A stretch of 64,000 nt of DNA from Guillardia theta CCMP2712 (lineage: Eukaryota; Protista; Cryptophyta), in NCBI RefSeq assembly GCF_000315625.1, contig NW_005434553.1, positions 153,204 through 217,203 of the forward strand, in the 5' to 3' direction. Positions 51,901 through 57,527 of this stretch are shown piece by piece. The position numbers were made by a program, and so were the translations under genes. The stretch's first letter is position 1, and every line of letters starts with the position of its first letter. Under the pieces are notes generated by a model, which had not been told where the DNA came from, searched no databases, and saw nothing but the letters and a program-made list of their open reading frames with translations.

Positions 51901-54900
51901 TTGTCCTCGGGTCTGCCATCAACTCCTCGTGGCCCCTTTCCTTCTTCTCCTTGGCACCTGCTGCATGCCCCGGCTGCTCCTACTACCAAGGGAGGTCAAT
52001 GGCTGTGGCCAGCCTGAGCTTGAGCGGCTTTGCGGGAGGCAAGCAAGTCTTCGTATACACGTACAGTCAAGGACCACGAGTTACCAGAGCAATCCTATCA
52101 CCAAGCGGATCAAGCTTAAAGGTGTCGTTTGATCAAGACATCTCTACTTTGATACAATCTTCAACGTCTTCATGCAACACTATTCTGGGCTTTATTCCAA
52201 CCATAGCTTCATTCACCTGCTACCTCGCTGGCTCTAACAGCGTCTACGTTGAGTTCAGCAATGCCTCGTCCGCGCTCCCTGGAAGTCTTGTTCAGCTGCT
52301 GCAGACAGTCTCCCCGAGCTCGCCGGCAACGTCAAGCATGGTCGAGTTGTCAGCGACCCCGACAGGAGTGAAGTACCTCCCCTCTATCATCGGCTCCTCT
52401 GAAATCGATTTCTGCTCCTCGCTGCACCTGAGAGCCTCGCTGGAGAGTCGGAGAGTGAGCAGATACATCTGGTCCTGCTCGAACAACAAGTATTTGCACG
52501 ACCTCCTCAGAATGTACCAGACTGACACCATCAATGTCAACCTTGACGCCATGGTGTTCAGAGGACTCCAAGATCAATACATCATCTCAGTTCAGGCTGT
52601 CGATGTGTTTGGCATCACAAGTGAGATTGGTCAGCACACTGTGAGGCACACTCTAGATTCTTCTCTGTTCGTGGTGATATCGGGCAAATCAGTGTACATG
52701 CGGGATGAAAACATCCTGCTGCACTCTTACTTGTCCCCGTCGTCTTGCTTGGGACAGTTCAGCTTGACGAATGTTTCCTGGAGATTCCTGTCATGGCCCA
52801 CAACCTTTGACATGAGCTCTGCTAGTCTCTTGAACGAAAACAACCGAGTAGATCTGCAAATAGGGGCCAACACACTGCCTGACGGATCCTACCAAGTGGA
52901 AGTTGCAGTATCGCTATTAGATCGACCCTACGTCTCATCAAGGTCGACCTTCCGCTTCCAGGTCAGTGGGGGCGCCACGTCCCTGCATGTGCTGGGGGGT
53001 TCGCAGCTGGAGATGTCGACGGACCAATATCTGACGTTGAACGTCTCACAGTCTAACCACGCGCCCGTTGCTTTCTCTTGGGTCTGCTCACAGCACATCC
53101 AAGGGGCTTCGTTTCCCTGCCTTGACCAGTACACGGGAATGAAGCTTGTCCTCCCATCCGACACCAACCTGACCATTGCTTCTTACACCCTGGTAGCCTC
53201 GCCCTATCCTTACTCGTTCTCTGTTGAGTGGTATGAAGGAAACTACTACCAACGGTCAAACGAAGTCAGCGTGACCGTGAAGAGTGGCCCAACTTTACAG
53301 GTAGCGATAAAGGACCTCCTGCTGAACGGAGAAGTTTTGCAACGAGAAATGATCAAAGTCAACGCTGGCGATAGACTTTCATTTGAAGCCCTGTCATCAC
53401 AATCAGCAGCCATCTCCTTTCAGTGGAGCATGAGCCCGTCGGTCAACGGGTTCTCTTTCAACAATCTTCCTCTCGGAAACAACTCGGCTCTCTTTGCGTT
53501 CGTTCCATCTGATGTTGCGCTGCTAACCCGAGCATCTGTGTACTCTATCTCTGTGAAGGCGTTCAGTGGTGGCTACAGTGGAGTCGCCGTGATGCAAGTC
53601 TACGTCAACGAGCCCCCCACTCCAGGAGTCTGCTCCTGCTGTATCAACTCAACCTGCCCTTGCCCATCGTCCATCAAATCCCTGCAGGACAAGCTTCTGG
53701 TGTCGTGCAGTGACTATACCGACGAAGACCTCCCGTTGCTGTACAACTTCGGCTTGAAAAACAAGGACGGGCAGATGTGGTTTGAACCAACTTTGATTCC
53801 ATACAAGACCTACCTGCTCGCTACAGGTTCACAGACCATCCAGATAAGTGTTTCAGATAGCCTGGGAGCAACTTCGGCGATCCAGACTTTGACGTTCACA
53901 GGCGATTCATCGGGCAGCGATAGTCTGCTGAACTCTACCGCCCTTACCATCCGGGAGTATGCCTATCTTGGCAGGCTAGATTATGTCAGCCTGGTCTCTT
54001 GCTCTCTCTATCAGATGATCGGATATCAGAATCTTTTGACTTGGCAGAAACACAATTTGTTGGACTCTATGGTGGCTTCGCTTTACACTGCACTTGGAAA
54101 CAGGATATTCAGCGCATCTGTTGTGGGCGAATATGTCTCTGTGACGAATCTCTTTTCAAAAGAAGCATGTATGATTTCCAATGGTTCGTTCTTCAAATTA
54201 CTAGAATCAGCTCAATTTGCCAGTAATTCCTTCCAACCAAGTCTTGACGATAGTAAGACGCAAAGCATCTCAACGAACTTCATTTCGATCATAAGCAACC
54301 TCATGGATGTATTTCAACAAAGCTGTTCTTCATACTCTCTAACACCCTTGCACAAGTTTACATTCCTGCAAAGCTCCAGGATCACAGAATTCAATGTGAT
54401 GAAGAGATCAGCTCAGTTTTATCTTCCGGGTGAGTTGCCTCTCACGGTCCATGTCCCCAACATCAATGCTACAACTGTGGTGCAACATGTCAATTTGATG
54501 ACCGACGTGCGGCTGACAACCAGCCCGAGCTCTCCTGAGACCTTCCTCATTCCTTCTTCTGTGCAACAACTTGACATGTTCCTTCAAAACCCGGTGCTGG
54601 ATGCCATACAGGTGGAGGAGAACATGTTGAGTGATTTGACCGTGTCATTGAGCGGGAAGATGTCTTCTCTCACGCTCGCTTACCATGACAGCTTCCAGCC
54701 TCTAGTGCTGCAGAACCTAATCGACCCGATCCTGATCAACCTTCCGTTCGACGTCAAGACTGTGCAGGCACTGATCTGCTCTACTACCTCGGCGTCAGGT
54801 CAGTCAGACTGTACCTGGTGGCCTCAGAGGCTGGGGTGTGCCTTTTATGACCCGACGAACAACAGCATGTCGTTCCGCGGGTGTTACTTGCGCAACATGA

Positions 54901-57527
54901 ACGAGGTGGCCGCGACAGGTGTCGCTCAGTGTGCCTGCAACCATCTTACCTCCTTCTCTCTGCTCATCAACACGTACGTGGCTGTATGCGGCGACGGCGT
55001 CATACAGGGGTCGGAGGGCTGCGACCAAGGAAGTCGCACGGGAGGCGGCTGCTCCAACAGCACTTGCCAGGTCACTCAAGGATGGCTGTGCCTTGGGCAG
55101 CCGAGCGTCTGCTGCGGGCCTTGTCCTCCTGGTCAGCAACGCATCGGATGCTCCTCGACCTCAGTTGGCACCTGCCAGAACTGCTCGGCTGGGACGGCCA
55201 AGTCCGTCTACGGCGCCTTCGACACTCAATGCAGCCCCTGCCCTTACGGCACTTACTCTCTCAGCGGAGCTCAATACTGCAACAACTGGCTGGTCTGTCC
55301 TGCTGGGTATGAGCGGACAGGAAACTCGTCGACGTCTGCCGGCACGTGTGTGGCTTGCGCGTATGGGTACTACAACCCGATCCCAGACTCTTCGTGCGAA
55401 CAAGTCCCTGCTTGCAACCAGACTGAGTTCCCGGGCTCATACAGGACCGCCTTCAACATCTCGTATGAGGGGGTATGCCTTCCCTGCTCTATCGGCACAT
55501 ATCAATACCTGGGGAATCGCATAAGCCCCTGCCTCACATGCCCTGCCTACAAGACAACCCCCTCGAGCGGATCGTTTGGTAAGAGCTCCTGCCAGTGTAT
55601 AACGGGGCTGGTCGAGGACCCAGCCACAGCTGGCTGTGTTTGTGATCGGTACAAGAACTCGTCCGGAGATGTTGTTGCTGGGTTCTTCGGCACCGCAGGT
55701 TCTTGCTCGCCCTTCTGCAGCACAGTCACATCAGCAACGTCGATTTACACGGGGCAGGTCAACAGCTCTCTCCCTATCACTTGCATCAACGGAGCGTGCG
55801 CTACCAACGCTAGCGACACCATCTACTATGGCTCCTGCGTTTGCGATCGTTACTGGTTCGGGTCGAGTTGCAACGTAGAGGCCAAACCCGCGTACACGTC
55901 TGGATTCGTTCCTCCCCAGAGAGACAAGGCGTCTACCTGGAACTCCAGCTTCTCGTCCATCTTCTTTCCTGCAGGCGCTGTCCCAGCTGGGGTCTCGCTG
56001 ACCTTGGATATCTACACCTACGCGGAGCTGATCGCCATCGGAGCGATCCAGAGCCCTCCCGCGGGAGTCGCTCTCTTCTCAGAGCTGCTAGACTTCGGTC
56101 CATCAGGGACCAAGTTCAACTCGCCCATCACCATGACGATCAAACTCTCCGGAGAGCCACCTGGAGGAGTCGTGAACATTGCCTTCTTCGACCAAAGTAC
56201 ACAGCAGTGGGAGGCTCTAGTGTCAACCTACGACGCTGCCAGCATGACTGTCAGCGCTCAGGTCGATCATTTCACCGTGTTTGCCGGGTCAAATCAGTCA
56301 GTGACTGTTACAACTACCACCACGACAACGGCGGCACCAACCACACCAGCCACCACCTCATCTCCGGGCTCCCCCCCCTCCTCCTCACCAGGACCTTCAC
56401 CGTCGTCTCCCTCTCCCCCAGGCCCCTCCCCTCCCCCAGGCCCATCACCCCCCACCTCCTCCACTTCCCCTGGTCCTTCTTCAAGTCCTACTTCCTCACC
56501 TGCCGGCGGCACCACCACGACCAGCAGCAGCAGCAGCAGCAGCAGCAGCAGCAGCCCAACCGCTGCTGCTCCTGGGCCATCAACAACCGCGGCTCCCAGC
56601 CCACCAGGTGCGGTCAGCGGCGGGGGAGGAACACCCATTGGCGCCATCGTGGGAGGTGCCGTTGGTGGTGTCGTGGTCCTGGCGGCCGTCGTCGGCTACT
56701 TCCTCTACCAACGCAGGGCACGAGAGACCATCCCTGTGGTCCCTGTAGTGAGCGCGTCCACGGTGATGGTACCGCTGCTGTCAGAGGAGGGCGAGGACGG
56801 AATCGCTACCGGAGAGAATGCCACAGAGGAGAGCGGGACAGGACAAGAGCGAGAAGGGTCGCGAGCTTCTACCGACGCCAACGCTGCTCGATCCAACATC
56901 GAGTCGAGCCAGCAGCCGGCAGAAGGAAGTGTCAAAGGCACCGCTGCTTCCTTGGAGGCCCCAGCTGAAGACCAAGAAGCACACGAGCAATCCAGTGCTG
57001 AGCCTAGTAACGCTCTAGCTGAAGGTTCCGAATCCAAGGAACTGCAGAGGGAGGTGCAGCAATGGTCAGGAGAGCAGTCAGCTGGGAGCCGAGAAGAAGG
57101 AGCTCCTTTAGACACGTCGGTAGAGCACACTATGCAAAGTGAGATCTCGAGCCATGGCTGGAGAAGCCCCGAGAGCGATACAGCAGCAGGAGCAGGAGCA
57201 GGAGCAGGAGCAGGAGCAGGAGCAGGAGCAGGAGCAGGAGCAGGAGCAGGAGCAGGAGCAGGAGCAGGAGCAGGAGCAGGAGCAGGAGCAGGAGCAGGAG
57301 CAGGAGCAGGAGCAGGAGCAGGAGCAGGAGCAGGAGCAGGAGCAGGAGCAGGAGCAGGAGCAGGAGCAGGAGGAGCAGGAGCAGGAGCAGGAGCAGGAGC
57401 AGGAGCAGGAGCAGGAGGAGCAGAAGGAGATTCCAGCGGTCCAGCTGATAGAACTCAGAGTGGTACAGCAGCTCAAGACCCCATCGCCTCCATCGACCTC
57501 TCCATCAATGAGCAGGCAAACCACTGA
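39918..57527 (+). CDS. Giant (about 5,820 aa) single-pass cell-surface protein: signal peptide, Cys repeats with PAN/SPRY inserts, FN3 x3, IPT/TIG array, REJ, GAIN/GPS, DUF4215-like and TNFR/GCC-like Cys repeats, EGF, ZU5-like, Pro/Ser/Thr stalk, TM, acidic Gly-Ala tail
   Basis: Four same-strand ORFs are joined in frame by introns 41039-41083 (GT-AG), 41488-41539 (GT-AG) and 45653-45690 (GC-AG, inferred). Motifs seen: GKYYWEL...VGIALD...LYPAV (SPRY); YRVKIYAIN and LELSWKIPSDTG (FN3); YPSAGPTTGGSLVTL (IPT); VNEPPTPGVC...CSDYTDEDLPLLYNF (REJ); CAFYD...GCYL...AQCACNHLTSFSLL (GPS). Further motifs: VCGDGVIQGSEGCDQG; DFGPSGTKFNSPITMTI...QWEAL...QVDHFTVFA (ZU5-like); and the TM IGAIVGGAVGGVVVLAAVVGYFLYQRR. 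Confidence 0.9.
57186..57423 (+). repeat. (GCAGGA)n coding hexanucleotide repeat giving a poly-Gly-Ala tract
   Basis: Roughly 40 units with two extra-GGA interruptions, in frame within the giant CDS. Confidence 0.95.

Follow-up and report, generated by a model that had tools for sequence, protein, structure and literature searches.

A giant surface protein of Guillardia theta with a GAIN domain and a ZU5-type domain in series, predicted to form a breakable tether

The subject of this study is a giant gene in a window of 64,000 nucleotides (nt) from Guillardia theta CCMP2712 (contig NW_005434553.1, positions 153,204 to 217,203 of the forward strand). The term window refers to this whole stretch; all coordinates are positions in it, and all features of the gene lie on its plus strand. 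Four predicted exons amount to about 5,824 amino acids (aa), as summed from their lengths, and encode a large ectodomain with a REJ module, a GAIN domain, a Cys-rich linker, a ZU5/MAIN-type domain, a stalk, a single transmembrane helix, and a cytoplasmic tail. Judging from structural models, its GAIN domain is genuine, and so is its membership of the ZU5 superfamily through a second domain. We propose that it is a giant type I surface adhesin or receptor in which two homologous self-cutting links in series would form a three-piece breakable tether with alternative break points, a reading to which we assign a probability of roughly 45%. The data presented here establish the anatomy and folds of the protein as well as the register and conservation of its two triads. 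An earlier interpretation made from the nucleotide letters (the sequence-only reading) had proposed a single-pass receptor with a GPS motif in a GAIN fold, a second cleavage motif in a ZU5/UPA fold, one transmembrane helix, no PLAT, seven-transmembrane (7TM), or channel domain, and a REJ-GPS-DUF4215-EGF-ZU5-transmembrane order to be sought in protist proteins; each of these elements was recovered, except for the UPA domain.

Both predicted cleavage motifs, the REJ module, and the transmembrane helix are found in a single open plus-strand frame of 3,965 codons (45630 to 57527), which alternative genetic codes did not usefully lengthen. Only two H-[LFM]-[TS] triplets occur in this frame, with their His codons at the proposed positions, 54942 and 56268, 442 codons apart. 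The REJ module (52767 to 53885; PF02010, 74 bits, E 1e-20, cut-off 25) is followed by a GPS (25.6 bits, cut-off 22.5), which in terms of Pfam families is the order of polycystin-1/PKD1. AlphaFold, with an alignment of 80 rows, modeled positions 53952 to 54983 as a complete GAIN domain (pLDDT 89.8) of seven helices and a beta-sandwich, the helical subdomain A extending to about 54413 and sandwich B following it. The model matches the GAIN domains of GPR126 (Z 21.0, root mean square deviation [rmsd] 2.8, 240 residues), ADGRL3 (Z 20.1), and GPR110 (Z 19.5). The triad H-L-T (54942 to 54950), within the motif CACNHL-T, has its predicted cut between 54947 and 54948, and its Leu superposes on the residue with which the N-terminal chain ends in the cleaved structures of GPR126, ADGRL3, GPR110, and GPR56. 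Residues encoded between 54843 and 54884 include a Phe at S10.49 (54843) and a Gly-Cys pair (54879 to 54884); an aromatic residue at S10.49 and Gly-Cys are marks of cleavage-competent GAIN domains (Pohl et al. 2026, PMC13062082).

The GPS His is 565 codons from the transmembrane helix, and the GAIN domain is thus not directly before it. Among the best 150 GAIN matches, hydropathy placed a transmembrane segment within 70 aa in 90 and farther away in 17. Every GAIN domain analyzed by Arac et al. 2012 adjoins the first transmembrane segment on its N-terminal side (PMC3321182); the giant protein, with its GPS about 565 aa from the membrane, breaks this rule.

The second motif is located in a beta-sandwich lacking Cys (55884 to 56294; AlphaFold pLDDT 82.7). 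Pfam scores for ZU5 were 16.7 and 19.8 bits with hmmscan and 22.4 bits in the genome search (cut-off 21). A profile built from 18 ZU5 copies of the genome matches ankyrins, ZO-1, and UNC5B, and the best structural match of the model is an ankyrin ZU5 domain (Z 12.2, rmsd 2.7, 124 residues), followed by GAIN-B of CD97 (Z 10.8) and BAI3 (Z 10.7), CARD8 (Z 8.6), NLRP1 (Z 8.3), and, weakly, Nup98 (Z 4.5). Since profile and fold agree, the assignment to ZU5 is confirmed despite the weak Pfam score. The triad H-F-T (56268 to 56276; motif VDHF-T) has its predicted cut between 56273 and 56274. Its Phe aligns with NLRP1 1212, Nup98 863, and GPR56 382 and its Thr with Nup145N 994 (mutated in that entry), these being known cut positions. 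Both motifs of the protein coincide with the cleavage sites of autoproteolytic domains of solved structure and belong to the few invariant columns described below; they are thus not chance occurrences. The UPA half of the expected ZU5/UPA pair is not present, as the low-complexity stalk and the transmembrane helix follow ZU5 at once. The nearest Atlas models of the ZU5 domain are prokaryotic (TM score of 0.73 to 0.82). A sequence search returned four short proteins; the nearest relatives found include one from Dehalococcoidia that combines the same type of domain and HF-T with a Thr stalk and a single transmembrane segment. The last residue of the triad is Thr in the window protein and Ser in almost all relatives; HF-T is also found in the prokaryotic relatives P0180 and P0181.

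The sequence-only reading had taken the two modules to be of different kinds, a claim that does not hold. A profile-profile comparison aligns the two with their triads in register (probability 76%, E 2e-5), and they are homologous members of a GAIN-B/ZU5/Nup98 superfamily with the same H-X-S/T chemistry, differing in family only. A review citing Liao et al. 2014 derives ZU5, GAIN, and Nup98 domains from one autoproteolytic ancestor and states that canonical UNC5 does not autocleave. In bacterial GAIN-B-like MAIN domains, Edman sequencing located a cut at HF-S, and the fragments stay associated; cleavage survives a Ser-to-Thr exchange, and nearly all MAIN domains assayed cut (Brogan and Rudner 2026, bioRxiv 10.64898/2026.05.12.724683). 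The second module resembles these domains and probably works as they do. A separate observation is that one axonemal doublet-microtubule protein type (PDB chains 8glv_AE, 9fqr_Hn, and 9y6s_9f) matches both the GAIN model (Z 12.6 to 13.4) and the ZU5 model (Z 7.6 to 9.9) and hence represents an intracellular GAIN-like fold.

The linker between the two modules (54984 to 55874) contains 34 Cys and consists of a DUF4215-like repeat, TNFR/ephrin-receptor-like repeats (ephrin-receptor-like Cys repeat, 27.8 bits; cut-off 23.1), and an EGF-like end; an Atlas feature search with the piece from the GAIN end to ZU5 returned no usable match. By composition, ZU5 is followed by a Ser/Pro/Thr/Gly stalk of 113 aa (56295 to 56633). 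The transmembrane helix (56637 to 56708) is the sole Kyte-Doolittle peak of the frame (2.49) and is followed by basic residues and a cytoplasmic tail of 272 aa (56709 to 57527), which is acidic, of low complexity, devoid of Cys and Tyr, and without a Pfam domain. Pfam gave no match in the protein to PLAT, 7TM, channel, lectin, or PKD-repeat families. Exon arithmetic predicts fragments of about 4,965, 442, and 417 aa, in line with the ectodomain of about 5,000 aa, linker of about 440 aa, and membrane stub anticipated previously. No disulfide bond could span the second cut, since Cys is absent from the stub and even in number (34) in the middle piece. The tail also contains a Gly-Ala repeat (57181 to 57429; 42 copies of a 6-nt unit). 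Unlike this acidic, Cys-free tail, cytoplasmic zinc ribbons end the paralog on contig C50 (locus L015) and a homolog from outside the genome, the metagenomic contig L057 (20231 to 21253 of that contig).

The layout is found in other proteins. A search of the genome with the GAIN domain retrieved the paralog on C50, which has REJ, HL-T, a similar linker, HF-S, and one transmembrane helix. A GAIN profile run against 1.84 billion representatives gave 150 matches, including P0058 and P0085. These two and the longer members of their clusters (P0153 and P0156, respectively) contain REJ, GPS, DUF4215, Cys repeats, ZU5 with HF-S, a stalk, and a transmembrane helix; P0058 is colinear with the window protein, linker included, over about 1,170 residues (27% identity, E 1e-95). 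For P0156, an apparent intron followed by a zinc-ribbon frame points to a eukaryotic host. Both triads are thus kept in four lineages, namely, the window gene, its C50 paralog, and the two metagenomic orthologous groups P0058/P0153 and P0085/P0156, in the same order and with a spacing of 435 to 537 aa. The four proteins have pairwise identities of 24 to 36%, and 65 of 581 columns are invariant. In GAIN these include H-L-T-x-F, the four GPS Cys, and Gly-Cys; in ZU5 there are eight, including the triad His and Phe and the Phe equivalent to S10.49. Since the searches used GAIN queries, the ZU5 triad was not selected for, yet HF-S is intact in the paralog and both orthologous groups. Linker Cys are conserved across relatives, and linker length and content vary. 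The four intact proteins group in the GAIN tree at a FastTree support of 93, which is not strong, and the ZU5 tree showed little resolution.

ZU5-type matches in the genome number at least 23, and almost every one lies immediately external to a single transmembrane helix; HF-S/T is kept in 14 of 18 aligned copies. Pfam GPS matches number eight, and a transmembrane segment follows directly in four of them. Five genes combine REJ, GAIN, a DUF4215-like repeat, and ZU5. Both triads are intact in the window gene and in that on C50, the GAIN triad is lost and HF-S intact in those on C39 and C35, and both are degenerate in that on C75. The layout thus outlives the loss of the upstream cut, as the last three genes keep it with a dead GAIN triad.

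Related arrangements were also noted. Four ZU5 copies (L007, L045, L046, and L040) have SF-S in place of HF-S, the motif type of NLRP1 and CARD8. In six further loci (L002, L003, L005, L006, L008, and L039), a stalk separates ZU5 with HF-S from a SEA-like domain, in several cases one with paired Arg, and a transmembrane helix comes next; this is possibly a second double-cut layout. Five proteins (P0157, P0163 [Teleaulax amphioxeia], P0076, P0081, and P0146) have a GPS, a DUF4215-like repeat, a SEA-like domain recognized by eye that often has an RR..L motif, and one transmembrane segment; the membrane-proximal module seems to be exchangeable between ZU5 and SEA-like. L048 (C23) and P0148/P0176 have a GPS, a small beta domain, a SEA-like domain, a stalk, and one transmembrane helix, with about 320 aa to the membrane, and L054 (C35:588492) has a degenerate GPS (HL-S, Cys partly lost), short Cys-Gly repeats, and an apparent intron, with no transmembrane segment seen in the locus. 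Two to three intact GPS in series, about 230 to 295 aa apart, precede the first predicted transmembrane segment in P0006, P0008, P0009, P0010, P0016, and P0022, and GPS-like repeats number five or six in P0004; some multi-GPS proteins may be artefacts of assembly or annotation.

The proposed mechanism is as follows. As the chain folds along the secretory pathway, the His of either triad would activate the Thr two residues on, and an N-O acyl shift would occur at L-T and F-T. The new N-terminal strands would stay locked in their beta-sandwiches, leaving three noncovalently held pieces. If the ectodomain were bound and pulled, the weaker link might part first, although this step is the weaker part of the scheme. 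A break at GAIN would free the outer piece and leave the Cys-rich linker on the cell, whereas a break at ZU5 would free the outer piece together with the linker and leave a bare stalk. Since the first rupture in a serial chain unloads the other link, alternative break points, and not a timed sequence, are the default expectation. By analogy with characterized domains, cleavage at ZU5 is very probable. Cleavage at GAIN is also probable but rated lower, because distance from the membrane lowers cleavage and paralogs lose the GAIN triad; that both sites cut and the mature chain is in three pieces is slightly favored. The membrane-proximal ZU5/MAIN link would accordingly be the more dependable of the two. 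As there is no 7TM bundle or channel, and as the tail lacks a recognizable domain, Tyr, and Cys, release or detachment is a likelier output than tethered-agonist signaling.

Several points weigh against this reading. (i) In ADGRE2 constructs, spacers that moved GAIN off the endoplasmic reticulum membrane reduced cleavage from 45% to 10% (PMC12488864). (ii) An intact motif is insufficient, as ADGRB2 has HLS and yet barely cleaves (half-life near 100 days; Pohl et al. 2026, PMC13062082). (iii) Both usual GPS Trp, present in 63 and 59 of the 80 aligned rows, are replaced in the window protein by Tyr and Met. (iv) Of the five genes of this layout, three no longer have an intact GAIN motif. (v) Part of the invariance of the GAIN His stems from selection by the search itself. 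(vi) Force release by MAIN domains is itself a proposal only (bioRxiv 10.64898/2026.05.12.724683). The alternative that survives best is that ZU5/MAIN alone cuts efficiently and that GAIN, carried within a REJ-GAIN structural unit, cleaves little or not at all, giving two pieces. The distance effect, the paralogs on C39 and C35 with a dead GAIN motif and intact HF-S, the replaced Trp, non-Trp at both places also in the C50 paralog and P0058, and the long branch of the window GAIN domain in the tree (1.69) all speak for it. However, isolated GAIN domains suffice for cleavage (Arac 2012, PMC3321182), and H-L-T-x-F, the four GPS Cys, and Gly-Cys are invariant among proteins so divergent; we regard the two-piece alternative as unlikely.

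The sequence-only reading had favored a two-stage shedding or force-release system, which does not follow from the anatomy. In a general form of such a system, both domains self-cleave and part at different forces, and an ordered two-step release, without a G protein-coupled receptor (GPCR) or channel, first unmasks a ligand-binding Cys-rich linker; this we hold to be improbable. The more specific version, an ordered device in which GAIN opens first and exposes the linker or the new N-terminal strand to a second partner, a second pull then opening ZU5, appears marginally less probable still. The retention of both triads in four lineages, in one order and with a spacing of 435 to 537 aa, and a linker with ligand-type folds (TNFR/EGF-like) and conserved Cys are consistent with such a device. 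Yet the first break takes the load off the other link of a serial chain unless the linker binds a ligand of its own, the linker varies in length and content, and the GAIN site is lost in paralogs with the layout intact. An ordered sequence would require both a linker ligand and a lower GAIN threshold.

It is equally improbable that neither site cuts usefully and that folding is what preserves the triads, as in slow adhesion GPCRs and the noncleaving ZU5 domains of ankyrin and UNC5. The slow turnover of ADGRB2 despite its HLS (PMC13062082), canonical UNC5, the ankyrin ZU5 domains as best structural matches, and the C75 gene, which lost both motifs and kept the layout, are in accordance with this idea, but ADGRB2 lacks the Phe and Gly present in the window GAIN domain, and cutting is almost universal among assayed MAIN domains (bioRxiv 10.64898/2026.05.12.724683). 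Quite improbable is an arrangement in which GAIN alone cuts and the ZU5-type domain serves as a structural spacer or for binding. It would account for the Thr in place of Ser and for the hmmscan scores under the cut-off; however, MAIN cleavage tolerates Ser-to-Thr, P0180 and P0181 share HF-T, and the Thr superposes on the nucleophile position of Nup145N.

Finally, an artefact of genomic reading, in which the transcript splices the GPS to a multi-transmembrane exon or two separate genes are involved, is very improbable: assembled read contigs of three studies, presumed to be RNA, showed no splice joints or gaps in 51200 to 57170, one of them is unbroken from 51200 to 56501, and the C50 paralog, P0058, P0085, P0153, P0156, and L057 have the same domain order in one frame, even if rare variants were dropped in assembly, coverage ends at 57170, and no single contig crosses a short repeat at 56502 to 56564. 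The length of that unbroken contig, like that of a second one, would put its far end at most some 200 nt before the start codon, in sequence that occurs only once in the genome, which fits one transcript. A raw-read RNA run gave 40 reads in this region, too few to judge expression.

Upstream of the large frame, introns were predicted from frame-compatible splice sites, for which alternatives exist. Exon 1 (39918 to 41038) provides the start codon, a hydrophobic signal-peptide-like stretch (peak at 39927), and a Cys-rich N-terminal region. Intron 1 (41039 to 41083; 45 nt, GT-AG) is the best frame-compatible donor/acceptor pair, and exon 2 (41084 to 41487, within the open frame 41043 to 41561) encodes Cys-rich repeats and has a match in L057. 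Intron 2 (41488 to 41539; 52 nt, GT-AG) is frame compatible, as is a 40-nt alternative (41493 to 41532). Exon 3 (41540 to 45652; 426 bits to P0153) encodes a weak SPRY-like domain, Cys-rich repeats, and fibronectin type III domains. It is followed by the probable intron 3 (45653 to 45690; 38 nt, GC-AG), which is frame compatible and for which longer GT-AG options exist, and by exon 4 (45691 to 57527), which runs as an open frame from an IPT/TIG array through the stop codon. In L057, one frame of 5,565 codons aligns with exons 1 to 4 in order, including the 3' part of exon 1, and P0153 (5,494 aa) is an uninterrupted protein that aligns with exons 3 and 4; as these two match independently, the four exons are read as one protein. 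The protein P0155 had no match to exon 1.

In the outer ectodomain, the SPRY-like domain (41581 to 41829) and the best of the fibronectin type III domains (44062 to 44370) are Pfam matches under the cut-off. The Ig-fold array of IPT/TIG type (approximate limits, 45760 to 51300) scored 20.4 bits for TIG (cut-off 20.9), and an Atlas feature search gave matches of 0.96 to clusters of IPT/TIG type, recognition being low. Repeated Cys-rich units without a Pfam match, common to P0153 and L057, occupy 40500 to 43200 and alternate with the SPRY-like and a possible PAN/apple-like domain seen by eye. Elsewhere, the window contains an open reading frame (ORF) with an RWP-RK domain (435 to 1151; 30.8 bits), an EF-hand ORF (5810 to 6673), and runs of N that mark assembly gaps (10678 to 10777, 16720 to 16819, 17981 to 18547, 20060 to 20280, and 58048 to 58982); stacked long ORFs near 17.6 to 20.5 kb and 57.8 to 59.2 kb are artefacts of such gaps.

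The protein is of interest in several respects. (i) As a naturally occurring case, it departs from the published rule placing GAIN right before the first transmembrane segment. (ii) The genome holds live/live, dead/live, and dead/dead versions of one layout, which allow a direct test of whether GAIN cleavage needs membrane proximity (Chung 2025). (iii) A single chain holds two branches of the autoproteolytic superfamily, which allows a comparison of the forces at which they rupture. (iv) Attachment, detachment, mating, and prey or predator contact are candidate roles in the alga.

The architecture had been thought undescribed. In the literature searched, which was mostly outside subscription journals and did not extend to Liao et al. 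2014, we found no paper on a REJ-GAIN-linker-ZU5-transmembrane protein and none on Guillardia with REJ or on a cryptophyte polycystin or GAIN protein, and to this extent the claim stands; serial self-cuts (PIDD1 and GPR116) and single-pass REJ-GPS proteins (SpREJ1) were known. As far as searched, the distal GAIN domain, the eukaryotic extracellular MAIN-type domain, and the series of live and dead paralogs are new, while the component parts and the idea of serial self-cleavage are not. Membership of the adhesion GPCRs was rejected, as one transmembrane helix and no 7TM bundle follows GAIN, and so was that of canonical polycystin-1, given that neither PLAT nor the 11-transmembrane/channel region was found. 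Closest in this respect are the sea urchin proteins SpREJ1, SpREJ8, and SpREJ9 (PMC1934368), which share REJ followed by GAIN/GPS, a large ectodomain, one transmembrane segment, and the absence of PLAT and of a channel; the window protein differs from this type in having about 565 aa (Cys-rich linker, ZU5-type domain, and stalk) between GPS and membrane.

Two cleavage modules in one ectodomain, SEA and then GAIN, also occur in ADGRF5/GPR116 and ADGRF1/GPR110, and GPR116 is cut at both SEA and GPS according to the title of Abe 2002. In those receptors, GAIN is membrane proximal and provides a tethered agonist to the 7TM bundle, whereas in the window protein GAIN is distal, the ZU5-type domain is proximal, and there is no 7TM bundle. 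In PIDD1, the cut sites lie in tandem ZU5 domains. Its two sequential self-cuts (F445-S446 and at S588) yield three fragments (PMC9162469) by the same chemistry. However, PIDD1 is cytoplasmic and signals via a death domain, while the domains described here are extracellular, one of them is a full GAIN domain, and no UPA or death domain was detected. The bacterial and archaeal MAIN domains share a GAIN-B-like sandwich without subdomain A, H-F-S/T, a position between an adhesive ectodomain and an anchor, and a stub without a signaling domain, a likeness of fold, motif, and placement. In that study, eukaryotic matches were removed, and tandem copies, protists, and ZU5 are unmentioned (Brogan and Rudner 2026, bioRxiv 10.64898/2026.05.12.724683). 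The window domain is eukaryotic, anchored by a transmembrane helix, and preceded by a full GAIN domain, and with it the range of MAIN-type release domains would reach beyond prokaryotes into a family of eukaryotic surface proteins with at least 23 matches in this genome.

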